From Octopus bimaculoides (taxonomy: Eukaryota): a stretch of DNA of 47,055 nt. Below the pieces are notes generated by a model. That model was not told the DNA's origin, searched no databases, and saw only the letters and a list, made by a program, of their open reading frames with translations. Every line of letters begins with the position of its first letter. The first letter of the stretch is position 1. The stretch covers positions 57,211,776-57,258,830 of the forward strand of contig NC_068996.1 in NCBI RefSeq assembly GCF_001194135.2. Reading direction: 5' to 3'. This document shows, in pieces, positions 21,705 to 41,480 of the stretch. The position numbers and the translations under genes were made by a program.

Positions 21705-22890
21705 GATTAAGTCAGGCAACTGCATAATTATTTAGCTCAGAATAAACCATTGTACTTGGCATTTGTTGACCTGGGGAAAGCTTTCAGCAGAGTATTTTGC
21801 TCTGTGCTATGGTGGTCTTTGAGGATGTTATGAATAGAGGAATGGCTTGTGGAAGTTGTTCCGGCTGTGTACATGAATGCTATCAGTAAGGTAAGAGCCA
21901 TCAGTACTGTAATAAATTTAGTGTGCAGGCAGTCATACATTAGGGCTCAGTTCTCAGCTCTTTCCTATACATCATTGTCCTTCATAACAGAAGAGTTTAA
22001 AACCATCTGCCCCTGGAAACTATTGTATTCTGATGATTTCACTCTCTTAGCAGAATCTGTAACAGAGTTAGAAAAGAAATTTTAGGTATAGAAGCAAAAC
22101 CTGGAATCAAAGGGCCTTAAAGTTAACTTAACAAAGACCAGCAAGAAAATAGACAAGACTCAACCCATTTCAGGGAAACAGCCCATTAAGTGTATCCAGA
22201 GCAAGCTATGGCCACACAAGAGTTGCAGTGGAATTACAGGAAGGTTAATGGAGAGAGTAGTGCTTGTGTGTGGAAAATGCACAGAAGGCATAGAGTCTAC
22301 AGATGCATGGAAATTGATTTTCTCAAATGTCCCAGACACTCTGTGGAGATAGTAGATCATTTTTGTTACTTAAGTGATAGCAGTGGAGAAGGATGTTCTA
22401 AAAGTAAGAATAAGAGTAAGTTGGAGAAAATTCAGAGACCAGTTACCTCTGTTCACAACAAAAGGTGTGTGTGTATGTCTCTCTCTCTCCCCCTCTCACT
22501 CCGCCCCTCTCTCTCTCTCTCTCCCCCTCTCACTCCGCCCCTCTCTCTCTCCNNNNNNNNNNCAAAAGGTGTGTGTGTATGTCTCTCTCTCTCCCCCTCT
22601 CACTCCGCCCCTCTCTCTCTCTCTCTCTCCCCAAGTGAAAGGCAGATTCTATGATGCTTGTGTACAAACAGCAAAGCTACATGGTTGTGCAACATGGGCT
22701 CTGAATGCAGAAGACATGCAAAAAACTAGAGAGAAAGGTAACTAGTTTTCTCCACAGGAGAGAAGACGGACATATGTGATGCGTATGAGTGAGAACAGTT
22801 ACATAAAGAAGTGCCAATTATTCAATCTGAAGATGTTGAGTCTTACAGAGTAGTTGACAAAGGACCAAAATAAAGTGGCCTTAGGATATC
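21705..22890 (+). mobile_element. RTE LINE coding fragment (RT to C-terminus), heavily decayed
   Basis: KPLYLAFVDLGKAF, WKLLYSDDF, GLKVNLTKT, half PHD, DHFCYLSD, LHGCATW, HVMRM, DLKMLSLTE. Confidence 0.9.
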
Positions 22891-27453: not shown

Positions 27454-28214
27454 TAGACTGAGAAAGACAGCAAGACAAACTGCAGGAAGAGAAGGCGGAG
27501 GTATATATTTATATAGACAGACAGATGGATGTACACCTGTGTGTGTGTAGGTGGAGGTGATGGTGGTGGTGGGCTGGTTCTTCCTTCCTATTCCAGATGT
27601 CTTCTTCAACTTTGAGATGAAACAGAAGTCAAAATAAACAAACAATCATTGACTTGTGATTTCCCTCATTAAACTATAGGATTTAATTGGTTCTCCTCGG
27701 TTTTAATGGGTTCTCTTTAGTTTACTGGGTTCTCTTTGGTTCCATCCTGAAATGTTTCAATATTGTAAGTCTCTTGAAATTACTAAAACTTATGTTAACT
27801 TCAACAAAAGTAACAAAACCTTGTGGAAACAGCAACTGTAAAAATAATGCTTCTGTGGCTATTGAGTTGTTTTGACTCTTATTTCTAGCAATGGTGGTAC
27901 TGATTACTGTTCTTTGTCACTTTTTTATTTATTTTCATTTTTATATCTGCAGCATCATTAATGCTTACACCCACAATGCTCATAACACTTATATTTACTA
28001 CGCCCCAAACACTTTCATATGCAATGCTTCCTTAGTCACCCCACCCTCAGTAGAGGCAACAACTTCAACAATTCTAACATGTTTGAATGACAGTAGGTTA
28101 AAAGCAGGAACAACTGTTATGACGTCTGTTGCCAAACAATCACAGGAATCTTCGTTTCTGGAGCTGAATAACATCTCTCCTTCCTGTGTTGCTTCGCATA
28201 TCTCATTCCCAGTT

Positions 28215-31149
28215 TTCAGAGTTGGCACTCTAAATGTAGACATATTGAAAGGTAAGTCCAGTGAGATTGTAGAGATGCTTGAACGGAGATGTGTTGATGT
28301 ATGTTGCATACAAGAGGTAAGATGGAAAGGAGCTTCAGCCAGTGTCCTCACAGGCAAAGCACACAGGTATAAACTCTTCTGGGAAGGTAATAGTGATGGA
28401 ATAGGGGGTGTGGGCATATGTCTTGCAGAGAAATGGGTGGATAAGATCGTAGAGGCCAGTCTTGAAGAATGGTATAGCTACAATTATCTCTGCCTACACA
28501 CCACAAGCGGGCCTACCAAATGAACAGAAGGATCACTTATGATATTCCTCTGCAGGCTACCTCAAAGACGAGTGACAATGATCTCATCTTTGTGGCTGGA
28601 GATTCTAATGGGCATGTTGGACAGCAACCTAGTATCTTCCATGGTGTACATGGGGACCATGGAGTTAGTACCAGAAATGAAAAGGGAACTAGGTTCCTGG
28701 AGTTCTGTAATGCAAATAACACCAACTTCAGGAAGCCAGCCAGTCACTTGATAACCTATCAATCAGGTGATTCTGCTAGCCAGAACGATTTCATTCTCAC
28801 CAGACAGTGGGATGCATGGTTGCTCTTAAATACAAAGACCCTCCCTGGTGAAGAATGTACCCCCCCCNNNNNNNNNNAGACCCTCCCTGGTGAAGAATGT
28901 ACCCCCCCCACACACACACACAGAATTGACTAGTTATTAGTGATTTTAGACTCGAGGCCAGAAGGATGCTAAAAAGTAGACCAATTTGGAAAAGGAGGAC
29001 TTGGAAGCTTAAGAATCCTTCACATGGTCAGAGATTTAGGGATATCCTTACTGAGATATTTGATGATAGGGAGGAGGAGCTACAGTCCTGTGACATAGAA
29101 GGCAGCTGGGAATTCCTGCGAGACAGCTTGCTGAGTGCCACAGACCAAATCTGTGGCTGGTGCAAAATCCCTTCCAGACCTAGGGTAACATGGTGGTAGA
29201 ATACTGTAGACAGGGCCATTAGAGCAACAAAACAGGCCTGGAAGAGTGGGGGTAGCAGGGGACTGTATCAGATAGCCAAAAGGGAAGCTAGGAGACAGGT
29301 ATATATATAGCCAAGGGAGTAGCAGAAAAGAAGACGTTTGCCAATGTTCAGCAACATGAGGACCAAAGAACTGAAGTATTTCGGATTGCAAGACAGTGTG
29401 TGAGAGAAAACCATGATGTCATAGGAGAGAAATGTGTCTGCATGGATGATGGTGCCCTTGCGTTTAATGATTCTGCAAAGAAAGAGGCTCGGAGATGCTA
29501 TTATGAAAGACTGCTGAATGGGTGGAGGAGAGTCTGCTAAAGGTTGACCCAATTGAGGGACCAACTGCCCGAATCGACAGTATTCTGGAAGGTAAAGCAA
29601 TTAAGGATATGAAGACAGGGAAAGCTTCTGGCCCATCAGGAATCACTGCTGAGATGCTTAAAATATCAGGTGGTGTGGGTTATGCTCTAGTCACCTGCAT
29701 CGTAAATCAAGTAGTTCATGAAGGAGTCATACCCAATGACTGGTATAGCAGCACCATAGTCAACTGCTGCAAGGGAAAGATAATGATTTAGATAGAAATA
29801 ACTACAGGGGTATCAAATTATTGGATCAAGTGATGAAAGTTACAGAGAGGGTCATAGCCCAACTAATTAGAGAGAGAGTTAACCTAGATGAGATGCAGTT
29901 TGGTTTTGCGCAAAGCAGAAGCACCACTGATGCTATATTTCTGGTAAGGCAACCACAGGAGAAATACCTAGCCAAAGATAAACCTCTGTGCTTGGCTTTT
30001 GTTGACTTTTGACAGGGTTCCCCGATACCTTATCTGTCGGGCGATGCGGAAACTGGGGATAGACAAGTGGTTGGTAAGAGCTGTACAAGTCCTGCACAGG
30101 GATGCTGTCAGTAAGGTGAGGGTTGACAATGTGTATAGTGAAGAATTCCAAGTAGAAGTAGGGTTTCATCAAGGATCAATCCTCAGTCCCCTCTTATTCA
30201 TTATAGTCCTCCAGGCAATAATAGGAATTCAAGACAGTCTGCTCCTGGGAGCTCCTCTATGCTGATGACCTTGCCTTAATAGCTGAGTCACTACCAGAAC
30301 TAGAGATGAAGTTTAGGGTGTAGAAGCAAGGTCCAGAATCAAAGGCCTTAGGGATAACCTAACAAAAACCAAAGCCTTAGTAAGTAGGAAGGCAGACAAA
30401 CTATAAATCCCTTCTGGTAAATGGCCCTGCTTGATCTGTAGAAAAGGCGTAGGTAGAAACTCCATAAGATGTACCCAGTGTATGCAATGGACACATAAAA
30501 GGTGCAGCAATATCAAAGAAAGGTTAACCAGGAAGATAGTTTTTGTGTGTGGCAGATGCACAGGGGCAATAAACACTAACGGTGTACAGAAAATAGATTC
30601 CATCACCTGCCAGGGGAAAAAACTAGAAGTAGTTGATAGCTTCCATTACCCAGGTGACCAAGTCTGCAGCAGGGGTGGTTGCTCTGAGAGCGTAGCAGTG
30701 AGAATAAGAATAGCCTGGGCAAAGTACAGGGAGCTCCTACCTCTACCGGCAACTAAGGGCCTCTCTCTCAGGATGAATGATAAGACTGTATGATGCATGT
30801 GTATGAACATGGCAGTGAAACATGAGCCATGACTGCTGAGGACATGTGTAGGCTTGAAAGAAATGAAGCTAGTATGATCTGCTGGATGTACAATGTCAGT
30901 GAGCACACACAACAGAGTGTAAGCACCCTGAGAGAAAAGTTGGGCATAAGAAGCATCGATTGTGGTGTGCAAAAGAGACAACTACACTGGTATGGTCATG
31001 TGTTACGTATGGATGGAAGAGGTAGACCCAGGAAGACATGGGATGAGGTGAAGCATGACCTTCAAACATTGGGCCTCACAGAGGCAATGACAGAAGATTG
31101 AGATCTTTGGATAAATGCTGTGATTGAGAAAACCCAGCAACTAAAGTGA
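28215..31149 (+). pseudogene. Disrupted RTE endonuclease / reverse transcriptase polyprotein ORF
   Basis: ORF-track pieces 27891-28523, 28520-28933, 28966-29199, 29522-29791, 29821-30012, 29999-30265, 30431-30793 and 30829-31101 tile one polyprotein. Likely native stop TGA at 31147-31149 after AVIEKTQQLK. Confidence 0.92.
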
Positions 31150-31442
31150 GATCGCAGACATGGCTGATGCCAGTATTGCATGTCCGGCCCATTTAAAAGT
31201 ACCCTTGATGCATCAGGCGATATGATATGCTTGAGAAGACCTGTTGAGTCAAGTAAAACCAAAATCGTAGCTCTGGCCAGTGTCCCTTGACTGGCTCCCA
31301 TTCCGGTGACATCTAAAATGCACTATGTGAACGTGGCCAATGCCAGTAACCTCTGACTGGCTCCCATGCTGGTGGCACATAAAAAGCACTATCCGATCGA
31401 TGCCAGGCTCGTAAGACTGGTTCCTGTGTCGGTGGCATGTAA

Positions 31443-31740
31443 AAAGCACCCACTACACTCTCGGAGTGGTTGGCATTAGGAAGGGCATCCAACTGTAGAA
31501 ATTCTGCCAGATCAGATTGGAGCCTGGTGAGGCCTTCTGGTTCACCAGTCCTCAGTCAAATCGTCCAACAAAGCACCCACTACACTCTCGGAGTGGTTGG
31601 CGTTAGGAAGGGCATCCAGCTGTAGAAACTCTGCCAGATCGGATTGGAGCCTGGTGAGGCCTTCTGGTTCACCAGTCCTCAGTCAAATCGTCCAACAAAG
31701 CACCCACTACACTCTCTGAGTGGTTGGCGTTAGGAAGGGC
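31443..31740 (+). repeat. 127-bp tandem repeat (about 2.3 copies) of the RTE terminal segment
   Basis: aaagcacccactacactctc starts at 31443, 31570 and 31697. The units differ at only a few positions. Confidence 0.9.
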
Positions 31741-35015: not shown

Positions 35016-36424
35016 GGTGCAGGCATTGATGAGCGGTAAGAAGCTTGCTCCCCAACCACATAGTTCCCTGTTCAGTCCCACTGCATGGTACCTTGGGCAA
35101 GTTTCTTCTACTGTACCCTCAGAGCAATCAAAGCCTTGTGAGTGAATTCGGTAGACAGAAACTGAAAGAAGCCTGTCATATCATCATCATCATTTAACGT
35201 CCGTTTTCCATGCTGGCATGGATTAGAGGGTCTGACTGGAACTGGTAAGCTGGGGAGCTGCACCAGGTTTCACTCTGATTTGGAATGGTTTCTACACCTG
35301 GATGCCCTTCCTAACACCAACCACTCCAGGAATGTAGTGGGTACTTTTTACATGCCACCAGCACAGAGGGCCAGTTACGAAACACTGGCATCGGCCATGA
35401 CTATAATCTCAAATGGTGTGACAGATCTTCTCTAGCACAATATATTGCCGAAGGTCTCGGTTACATGTCACAGTCTCCATGAGGCCCAACATTCGAAGGA
35501 TGCTTTTTACATGCCACTAGAACAGGTGCCTGGTATGCAACACTGGCATCAGCCATGGCTATGATTCCACTTGGCTTGACAGGTCTTCTCAAGCACAGCA
35601 TATCACCCAAAATTTGAAGGGTACTTTTTATGTGCCACCAGCACGAGCGATAGTCACACAACACTGGCATCAGCTATGACTGTGATTTCACTTGACATAC
35701 AGTCTGTCTTTCACTCTGAGAGAGAGAGAGGCCCTTTGTTACTAACAGAGATAGGAGCTCTTTGAACTTTGCCCAGCTTATTCTTATTCTAGCAGCTATG
35801 CTCTCAGAGCATCCACCTCCGCTACTGATTTAGTCACCTAGGTACCAGAAGCCATCAATTACTTCTAGTTTTTCTCCTTGGCATTTGAAGGAGTCTATTT
35901 TCTGCACATTTTTAGTGTTAATTGTACGTGTGCACCTTCCACACACAAAAACTGTTTTCTCTGTTAACCTACCGCTGATATTGCTGCACCTCTTATGCGT
36001 CCATAGCTTACACAGGGTACATCTAATGGAGTTTCTACCTATGCCTTTTCTACAGGTCGAGCAGGGCCATCTACCTGAAGGGGTTTGTGATTTGTTTTCT
36101 TTCTTACTTACTAAGACTTTGGTTTTTGTTAGGTCAACTATAAGGCACTTCAAATCTAGGCCTTGCTTCCATACCTGGAATTTATCCTCTAGTTCTGGTA
36201 GTGATTCAGCTATAAGAGCAAGGTCATCAGTAGGAAAAGGTCATATAATATGCATGTATATGTGTGTGGGTGGGTGTCTTTTTATCTGTGTTTGACCACC
36301 ACTTGACAACCCATAACTTAGCAGTTCAGCAACAGAGACCGATAGAATAAGTACTAGACTTAAGAAATAAGTTGTGTGGTCAATTTGCATCGCCACAATC
36401 AAACAGACAAGTAAAAGATGAAAG

Positions 36425-37900: not shown

Positions 37901-38166
37901 CGTTGCCAGTACCGCCTGACTGGCTCTTGTGCGGGTGGCACATAAAAGACACCATTTCGAGCGTGGCCGTTTTCGTGCAGGTGACATGTAAAAGCACCCA
38001 CTACACTCTCTGAGTGGTTGGCGTTAGGAAGGGCATCCAGCTGTAGAAACTCTGCCAAATCAGATTGGAGCCTGGTGTAGCCATCTGGTTCACCAGTCCG
38101 CAGTCAAATCATCCAACCCATGCTAGCATGGAAAGCGGACGTTAAACGATGATGATGATGATGATG
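37901..38166 (+). mobile_element. Young 5'-truncated RTE 3' end with (GAT)n tail
   Basis: Close to the 31443 tail, retains many CpGs, and is flanked by aaatatatata on both sides (probable TSD). Confidence 0.9.
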
Positions 38167-41062: not shown

Positions 41063-41480
41063 TCATCATCATCATCATTTACCATATTCCATGCTGGCAT
41101 GGATTGGATAGTTTGTCAGCGTCCAGCAAGCTGCAGGGTTGTGCTGAGTCCCGGTGTCAGCTTCAGCATCATTTCTATGGCTGGATGCCCTTCCTAAATT
41201 CGACCACTTCACAAAGTGTATTGGATACTTTTTTCCCTGTGACTGGCACTAATGGTGTTTCCAGAGGACATAAAAGAACAGAGAAAAGGGAAAAGAAAAA
41301 AAAGCTCCTGCTTCTGAGTGAGGATAATTGAGAGGACAGGGATGGCTTCATGTCAGGTATTGAGAGACAGAGGGAAAAGCACAGGTGTCTTGCTATAGAG
41401 GAATGTCAAGGTACAGGAAAGTGAGCAGGATATGGACAGTGGGTTAGGGAAGGGGAGGAGATAGTTAATAGAGATAGGGA
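41063..41480 (-). mobile_element. Repeat with RTE-type tail
   Basis: (cat)n, ttccatgctggcatgg, ggatgcccttcctaa, followed by a purine-rich body. Confidence 0.6.

Follow-up and report, generated by a model that had tools for sequence, protein, structure and literature searches.

A PHD-type zinc finger between motifs 6 and 7 of the reverse transcriptase in a family of RTE-type LINEs present in Octopus bimaculoides

The stretch of Octopus bimaculoides DNA analyzed in this work, referred to as the window, comprises 47,055 nucleotides (NCBI RefSeq assembly GCF_001194135.2, contig NC_068996.1, positions 57,211,776 to 57,258,830 of the forward strand) and includes four copies, named A to D, of long interspersed nuclear elements (LINEs) of the RTE type. 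The nearly full-length copy C encodes a complete PHD-type zinc finger within its reverse transcriptase (RT). A preliminary description of the window, made from its letters, had reported this finger and considered it a trait of an RTE family. The analyses presented here showed that this segment of 44 residues is a true zinc finger of the PHD type (C4HC3, with a predicted cross-brace), that in the primary structure it is located between RT motif 6 (the KTK strand) and motif 7 (the FxYLGD hairpin), and that it is an integral, family-wide conserved domain of the single open reading frame (ORF) of the element. The four copies were delimited by tblastn with two homologous database proteins, P0121 and P0001, in combination with three-frame translation (Table 1).

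Translation of positions 30428-30559 of the forward strand (copy C) produced CLICRKGVGRNSIRCTQCMQWTHKRCSNIKERLTRKIVFVCGRC, a finger of 44 codons with all eight ligands. Positions 35932-36063 of the reverse strand (copy D) encode CSTCRKGIGRNSIRCTLCKLWTHKRCSNISGRLTEKTVFVCGRC, which also has 44 residues and all eight ligands. The ligand spacing is the same in both copies, C-x2-C-x10-C-x2-C-x4-H-x2-C-x14-C-x2-C, and their net charges are +10 (copy C) and +9 (copy D). The coordinates and residues of both modules agreed with the preliminary description, which had also mentioned a partly kept finger near position 22191 and a terminal CxxC at position 16548. Both remnants were recovered. The one in copy B includes the peptides LWPHKSC (22206-22226) and CGKCTEG (22269-22289), and the Cys codons located just upstream of the CRRC of copy A are part of a (TG)n microsatellite. 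The RT landmarks that had been described around the copy C finger, YADD, LTKTK and LEVVDSFHYPGD, were found at the same sites. A relaxed C4HC3 pattern searched in the six frames of the window matched only the fingers of copies C and D, while no match was obtained in 200 block-wise, composition-preserving shuffles of the window. This result argues against a chance pattern, or a host exon picked up by one copy, as the origin of the finger. Such an origin, in favor of which nothing was found, has practically no probability and is refuted by the family survey described below, since no homologue spanning the region lacks the finger, including intact full-length ORFs of many assemblies.

Comparison of the window fingers with Pfam resulted in scores of 29.2 bits (copy C) and 27.8 bits (copy D) for PF00628 (PHD), which has a gathering score of 24. 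This was the sole family above its gathering score; the C1, RING-like and PHD_2 families were below their cut-offs. The PF00628 threshold was passed also by the intact homologues P0121, P0001 and P0248. A profile was then built with the fingers of 93 family members sharing less than 70% mutual identity and compared with the sequences in PDB. All 60 matches listed, the best 60 of 106, were PHD fingers, with Pygopus at the top (E = 3e-7). An AlphaFold2 model of the copy C finger, built with 92 homologues, had a predicted local distance difference test score (pLDDT) of 83, with strands at residues 18-20 and 27-29 and helices at 30-33 and 48-51, as expected of a PHD fold. A Foldseek search with this model found PHD structures in 48 of the top 50 PDB matches, with template modeling (TM) scores of 0.54-0.74 and root-mean-square deviations down to 2.0 Å. 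The other two were FYVE-type structures. These two matches, as well as the sub-threshold Pfam scores for C1_1 (25.4 bits, cut-off 26.5) and zf-RING_16 (13-15 bits), are compatible with a different cross-brace or treble-clef zinc module, such as RING, FYVE, C1 or ZZ. However, this alternative is very improbable considering that only PHD exceeds its gathering score, that the matches listed for the profile and nearly all of those in the fold search are PHD fingers, and that the ligand order is C4HC3 with a Trp residue two positions before the His (His-2). Therefore, the identity that had been proposed from the ligand spacing was confirmed by the hidden Markov model (HMM), by the comparison of the profile with solved structures and by the predicted fold, and RING and FYVE were not the better match.

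The placement of the finger was established by comparing P0001, which of the intact relatives is the one nearest to copy C (67% identity), with the bovid BovB protein P0348. BLASTP aligned them in two colinear segments, residues 16-169 with 10-161 and residues 248-436 with 173-362. The first segment ends at KTKVLVS in P0001 and KTNIMAS in BovB, and the second starts at LGVVDSFSYLGDKI and VETVADFIFLGSKI, respectively. Between the two segments there are 78 residues in P0001 versus 11 in P0348, which corresponds to an insertion of about 67 residues relative to BovB. In the inserted region the 44-residue finger is preceded by a linker of 14 residues and followed by one of 20 residues. In the intact homologues, the Pfam RVT_1 match ends at position 193-194 of the 205 positions of the profile, directly ahead of the finger. 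Alignments to R2 end at motif 6 and those to L1 ORF2p end earlier, none of them spanning the insertion. When the insertion was removed from P0121 and the remaining sequence was compared with the PDB sequences, the L1 and R2 alignments still ended at or before motif 6, with no bridge to motif 7.

An AlphaFold2 model of full-length P0121 (pLDDT 85.5, predicted TM score 0.77) resembled full-length L1 ORF2p and R2, which were global matches in a fold search. In this model the KTK strand (769-773) is followed by the two finger strands (799-802 and 807-810), the motif 7 beta-hairpins (845-867) and the helical thumb. These results showed that the protein is composed, from its N-terminus onward, of an APE endonuclease, the fingers and palm of the RT, the insertion (linker-PHD-linker), RT motif 7, the thumb and a BovB-like C-terminal domain (CTD). 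The location inside the RT claimed in the preliminary description was thus supported by the BovB segments, the end of the RVT_1 match and the order of elements in the model. The preliminary description had also raised the question of whether the finger loops out of the RT. The finger is indeed interposed between motifs 6 and 7, but it does not appear to be a floppy loop. The pLDDT is about 90 for the finger and both linkers, and the module is therefore predicted to be docked on the enzyme as a fixed part of it.

The stitched palm-finger-thumb segment of copy C, used as query, retrieved 1413 proteins, most of them with PF00078 and PF00628. A full-length copy with one in-frame stop (L002) retrieved many intact proteins of 1040-1130 amino acids with PF03372, PF00078 and PF00628, and some clusters of these intact homologues hold hundreds of members. 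A strict C4HC3 pattern fits 245 of 290 retrieved proteins. Eleven full-length proteins that do not fit were inspected, and they differ only in the spacing between His and Cys (His-x3/4-Cys). Among the remaining exceptions, the shorter proteins that were inspected have a point change at or adjoining a ligand, and all others are fragments. None of the eight ligands varies in the 93 sequences of the profile, and P6, V9, G13, V14, N17, S18, I19, W27 and L39 are conserved in at least 90% of them. In an exhaustive HMM search of 1.84 billion representatives, the number of matching clusters, defined at 50% identity, was 3794 with E ≤ 1e-3 and 906 with E ≤ 1e-10. Twenty-four of 25 sampled hits were RTE fragments in which the finger was likewise flanked by KTK and FCYLGD, and the remaining one looks like a chimeric gene model. 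In 67 full-length sequences the finger, which had no gaps, reached a mean conservation of 0.67, compared with 0.63 in the endonuclease and 0.65 in the thumb. The suggestion that the finger is a family trait was thus correct, the ligands being kept in the retrieved homologues that span the region, intact full-length proteins included.

The proteins with a named host that are nearest to the window copies belong to two octopuses, Octopus vulgaris and O. bimaculoides. Another named host among the matches is the catfish Neoarius graeffei. Most matches derive from metagenome or Logan contigs. Some of them are labeled as bacterial 'MAG', one coming from a Lucinoma (lucinid clam) symbiont bin, and are probably host contamination. 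One fragment of 140 amino acids, P0412, has two tandem units composed of the KTK strand and the finger, with the variant finger PCGCCGKGV...WCHGRC; this arrangement may reflect a true duplication of the insertion, or it may have arisen during assembly. In the databases, many proteins of 447-449 amino acids (P0001, P0006, P0023 and others) begin at the conserved Met of the RT block MQFGF, and the single in-frame stop of L002 (3983-4000) is located five codons upstream of this Met. A split ORF or a programmed stop at MQFGF was considered and rejected: copy C reads through this point, intact ORFs of 1040-1130 amino acids are common, and the stop in L002 is a single point stop. The 447-449 amino acid proteins appear to be ORF-calling artefacts on damaged copies.

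The assignment to the RTE group made in the preliminary description is supported by the architecture of the protein and by the CTD that it has in common with BovB, as judged from sequence comparisons. The element is about 3.3-4.1 kb long, and one contig of 4073 bp holds a single ORF of 1042 amino acids. As expected of the RTE architecture, the only ORF begins with an APE endonuclease, the RT comes next, and neither an RNase H domain nor a C-terminal CCHC is present. The only Pfam domains in the intact homologues of 1040-1130 amino acids are PF03372 and PF00078, in addition to PF00628, and Pfam found no other zinc-binding or Cys-rich domain in the ORF of two intact members. The similarity between P0001 and the BovB protein P0348 extends through the thumb and CTD up to the last conserved motif (E = 1e-13) and includes the palm (E = 6e-9), unlike that with the L1 and R2 sequences, which do not align past motif 6. 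The BovB sequence used as bait had 85-96% identity to bovid proteins in the database, and the evidence was taken from these proteins alone. BovB resembles the element in having a single ORF with N-terminal APE and RT, in which further zinc domains and RNase H are absent, and the C-terminal motifs RLRW/YFGH..R, G-R-x-R-x-x-W and D-R-x-x-W-R align. The main difference is the region between motifs 6 and 7, which is occupied by the finger and its linkers in this family and by the 11 residues in BovB. PF00628 was found in none of 120 listed BovB proteins, bovid copies such as P0297 and P0348 among them.

The PHD domains reported for LINEs so far are those of CR1/L2-type elements, in which they are part of ORF1 or N-terminal in ORF2 or in the single ORF; their function was never studied, and genome targeting was proposed (PMC4120745). 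This is in agreement with the preliminary description, which knew PHD fingers from the ORF1 of these elements rather than from inside an RT. The family described here has in common with the CR1/L2 (Jockey-superfamily) LINEs the presence of a PHD-type finger in a non-LTR retrotransposon (PMC4120745). However, the CR1/L2 fingers are separate modules, whereas in this other group of LINEs the finger interrupts the RT itself. A full-text search of published articles found no description of a PHD finger inside the RT of an RTE element. The domain is already marked by automatic annotation, as in the UniRef entry 'Zinc finger PHD-type domain-containing protein' (an O. bimaculoides fragment), and precomputed Pfam lists already pair PF00078 with PF00628. 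RTE LINEs with an RT-embedded PHD finger may also be informally known to curators.

A possible published member of the family is RTE-2_OV, a LINE expressed in the octopus brain and placed in the RTE clade in the phylogeny of its authors (PMC9115989). Its ORF of 1109 amino acids includes an endonuclease, an RT and a 'C2H2' zinc finger that was considered 'relatively rare in RTE elements' (PMC9115989). The host, the single ORF and the size (1109 versus 1040-1135 amino acids in the homologues) agree with the family described here, unlike the name of the finger, called C2H2 by the authors with no mention of PHD (PMC9115989). The 'C2H2' finger of RTE-2_OV may be the same PHD finger under another name, which is no more than a lead. 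In the text of that article, the termini (N or C) at which the endonuclease and the finger are located have been exchanged.

The preliminary description had proposed that the finger could be a module for reading chromatin, since many PHD fingers recognize the tail of histone H3. The site of canonical H3-reading PHD fingers is primarily negatively charged and accommodates A1, R2 and, if unmodified, K4 (PMC10124903). In these readers carbonyls and acidic side chains bind A1 and R2, an aromatic cage encloses K4me3, and acidic residues are the ligands of K4me0 (PMC10124903). The Trp expected for the aromatic cage is present at His-2 in 92 of the 93 fingers of the family, and an aromatic residue (Y, F, W or H) is found at Cys1-2 in 91 of them, aligned with the Tyr of 'YPCG' in Pygopus. 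The negatively charged H3 site could not be recognized in the amino acid sequences. The net charge of the core is on average +6.1 ± 1.9 (range +1 to +12, never negative), and no acidic residue is conserved near Cys3-Cys4 or on the strand/loop side, the residues after Cys3 being T, S or G. Acidic residues exist only in part of the family, in a 'DPxF' loop, and the octopus copies do not have them. The conserved basic features are HK[K/R]C after the His and K or R at four further positions. The closest solved structure by profile is the Pygopus PHD finger (2vpe, 4up0; TM score 0.74), which binds H3K4me2 and BCL9. Both fingers share the pattern Y-P-C-G-x-C ... A/S-I-L-C ... C-x-K-W-x-H-x-x-C-x-G. 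In contrast to Pygopus, which has a net charge of -6 in the aligned part, the finger of the RT has a basic character (+6), its Cys2-Cys3 loop is two residues shorter, and the distance between Cys6 and Cys7 is also shorter.

We hypothesized, with a degree of belief somewhat below even, that the finger would be a zinc-braced, positively charged nucleic acid contact used in target-primed reverse transcription (TPRT), and not a canonical H3 reader. The finger would grip the target DNA, or the template/primer, beside the palm-thumb junction during TPRT, and it would supply a zinc module to an otherwise minimal RTE protein. L1 and R2 carry their zinc module elsewhere in the protein. This function was ranked ahead of a reader of H3 or chromatin, and this one ahead of a brace or adaptor, on account of the basic charge, the position equivalent to that of R2 motif 6a and the absence of another zinc module in the RTE protein. 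As its name implies, motif 6a is taken to be located between motifs 6 and 7 of R2. The insertion, found directly after motif 6, would then share its position. Motif 6a, assigned by the published studies to the RT domain, contacts and wedges into the upstream target DNA during TPRT, as seen in three R2 structures (PMC11204384, PMC12180492, PMC13188248). Both are lineage-specific elaborations of the RT directly past motif 6, the point where the alignment of P0121 with R2 ends, but motif 6a is a loop with no zinc finger and no sequence similarity to the insertion, and R2 has a restriction-like endonuclease and N-terminal ZnF/Myb domains. A literature search for 'motif 6a' in combination with ORF2p found nothing. 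Several considerations weigh against a nucleic acid contact. The equivalence with motif 6a appears to be positional only, R2 being from another LINE group with another endonuclease. The conservation of the two positions, which in readers of the Pygopus/TAF3 type build the methyl-lysine cage, and the fact that all the nearest solved relatives are H3K4 readers favor a chromatin reader. In addition, the net positive charge deduced from the sequences would be compatible with binding to an acidic protein surface or to phospholipids.

A finger that reads histones, either at the H3 tail, with or without methylation of K4, or at a different surface, tethering the ribonucleoprotein to nucleosomes and biasing insertion, is possible although unlikely. 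Besides the PHD fold and the cage aromatics, this function would be consistent with the identity of the nearest solved relatives, Pygopus, PHF13, PHF23, TAF3, BPTF and BAZ2A, and with the nearly invariant N-S-I strand, the one that would pair with the peptide; the same role was proposed for the ORF1 PHD domains of the CR1/L2 LINEs (PMC4120745). However, the basic character of the finger, including HK[K/R]C, together with T, S or G after Cys3 and the lack of the acidic 'DPxF' loop in the octopus copies, does not fit a canonical site that is primarily negatively charged (PMC10124903). Furthermore, in the model the finger and linkers are placed against the RT with high confidence, and the peptide groove may thereby be occupied. 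The proposal of a chromatin-reading module is weakened: the two aromatic positions of the cage are there, but the charge and the missing acidic residues of the groove point in another direction. Less probable still is that, in a large, active, cross-phylum RTE lineage, the PHD finger at the palm-thumb junction couples a chromatin mark such as H3K4 methylation, recognized by the conserved Trp and the other aromatic residue, to RT priming and steers insertion. It is also improbable that the finger, with neither a nucleic acid nor a histone as external ligand, is a structural brace that steadies the palm-thumb junction, or an adaptor that recruits a host protein or one of the element itself for oligomerization, nuclear import or interaction with a replication factor. 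In favor of a brace, the finger and its linkers are modeled with high confidence as a fixed part of the enzyme, and the nearly invariant G-V-G-x-N-S-I and P-C-x-V-C patches could form an intramolecular interface. An adaptor would have a precedent in Pygopus, the closest solved PHD finger, which binds BCL9 besides H3 according to the titles of the structure entries. Conversely, a loop of 11 residues at this place is enough for BovB-type RTEs to function, and the junction therefore needs no brace in principle. In addition, a charged ligand is favored by the basic surface, which is consistently found in the more than 90 divergent sequences.

The DNA of the window is AT-rich, filled with microsatellites and broken by N gaps. 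Table 1 lists the coordinates of the LINE copies. Copy C aligned with residues 39-1030 of P0121 in 10 frame-shifted pieces with stops (tblastn). Copies C and D share 80% nucleotide identity over 536 bp. Most of the thumb and the whole CTD are deleted in copy D, with 3′ untranslated region (3′ UTR) sequence kept further downstream. This deletion of about 330 bp corresponds to the region from 30792 to approximately 31106-31144 in copy C, and it was noted at 35722-35696 / 35693-35501 of the reverse strand. Copy B shares 30-37% amino acid identity with the probes P0121 and P0001, and it is older or belongs to a different subfamily. All four copies are dead, copy C due to many stops and frameshifts and the other three because they are truncated or deleted, and for this reason the functional statements made above concern the family and not these loci.

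Table 1. Location of the LINE copies in the window and of their domains and motifs
Feature	Position	Strand	Remarks
Copy A	16548-17034	+	5′-truncated inside the finger; motif 7, thumb and part of the CTD kept; N gap at 17036
Copy A, finger remnant, last CxxC (CRRCTG)	16548-16565	+	At the 5′ truncation point
Copy B	21533-22829	+	Endonuclease fragment; internal deletion; 10-N gap at 22553-22562
Copy B, partial finger	22191-22289	+	...LWPHKSC...VLVCGKC left; first two Cys pairs deleted
Copy C	28197-31146	+	Near-full-length dead RTE-type LINE ORF
Copy C, APE endonuclease	~28197-28864	+	Followed by 10-N gap 28868-28877
Copy C, RT	from ~29490	+	Thumb and CTD extend to 31146
Copy C, RT catalytic motif 5 (YADD)	30258-30269	+	
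Copy C, RT motif 6 (LTKTK)	30359-30373	+	Final RT block ahead of the insertion
Copy C, PHD-type finger	30428-30559	+	Translation, PF00628, AlphaFold2 model
Copy C, RT motif 7 / primer-grip block LEVVDSFHYPGD	30623-30658	+	First RT block past the insertion
Copy C, probable 3′ UTR (tentative)	31147-31740	+	Includes the 127-bp tandem repeat (31443-31740); same sequence 3′ of copy D
Copy D	35722-36231	-	5′-truncated at (Y)ADD
Copy D, PHD-type finger	35932-36063	-	Translation, PF00628

A tandem repeat of 127 bp (31443-31740; 2.3 copies, 97% matches) is located directly 3′ of copy C and enters an N gap. Related units are found 3′ of copy D (35261-35393, reverse strand) and, with no LINE ORF nearby, at 2190-2333, 37904-38117 and 41171-41234. 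The repeat could be a 3′ UTR repeat of the LINE, or a short interspersed nuclear element or satellite that shares the LINE tail. The sequences flanking the 10-N gaps in copies C and B are duplicated, for example ...PSLVKNVPPP / N gap / PSLVKNVPPP.... These duplications look like a scaffolding artefact rather than biology, in which case the apparent damage to the copies is inflated.

The ORF2 of LINEs has been described as 'highly constrained', in comparison with the variable ORF1 (PMC4120745). LINE RTs are regarded as architecturally constrained, and in this family a folded zinc domain of 44 residues is found between two core RT motifs. The finger has been kept under selection as strong as that of the endonuclease, in thousands of clusters and in at least cephalopods and teleosts. 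The family may also lead to a new label for the 'C2H2 zinc finger' of RTE-2_OV. Since the insertion appears to be located at the site where R2 motif 6a engages the target DNA, the lineage would be a natural experiment on target engagement in LINE RTs. This subject is timely, as structures of L1 and R2 in TPRT have become available and the engineering of R2-type enzymes for gene insertion is under way. The interest would increase if the finger couples chromatin state, or the capture of target DNA, to priming. A chromatin-reading finger, if this function were true, would represent a new way of choosing insertion sites for a non-LTR element, an epigenetic targeting device built into the polymerase domain.

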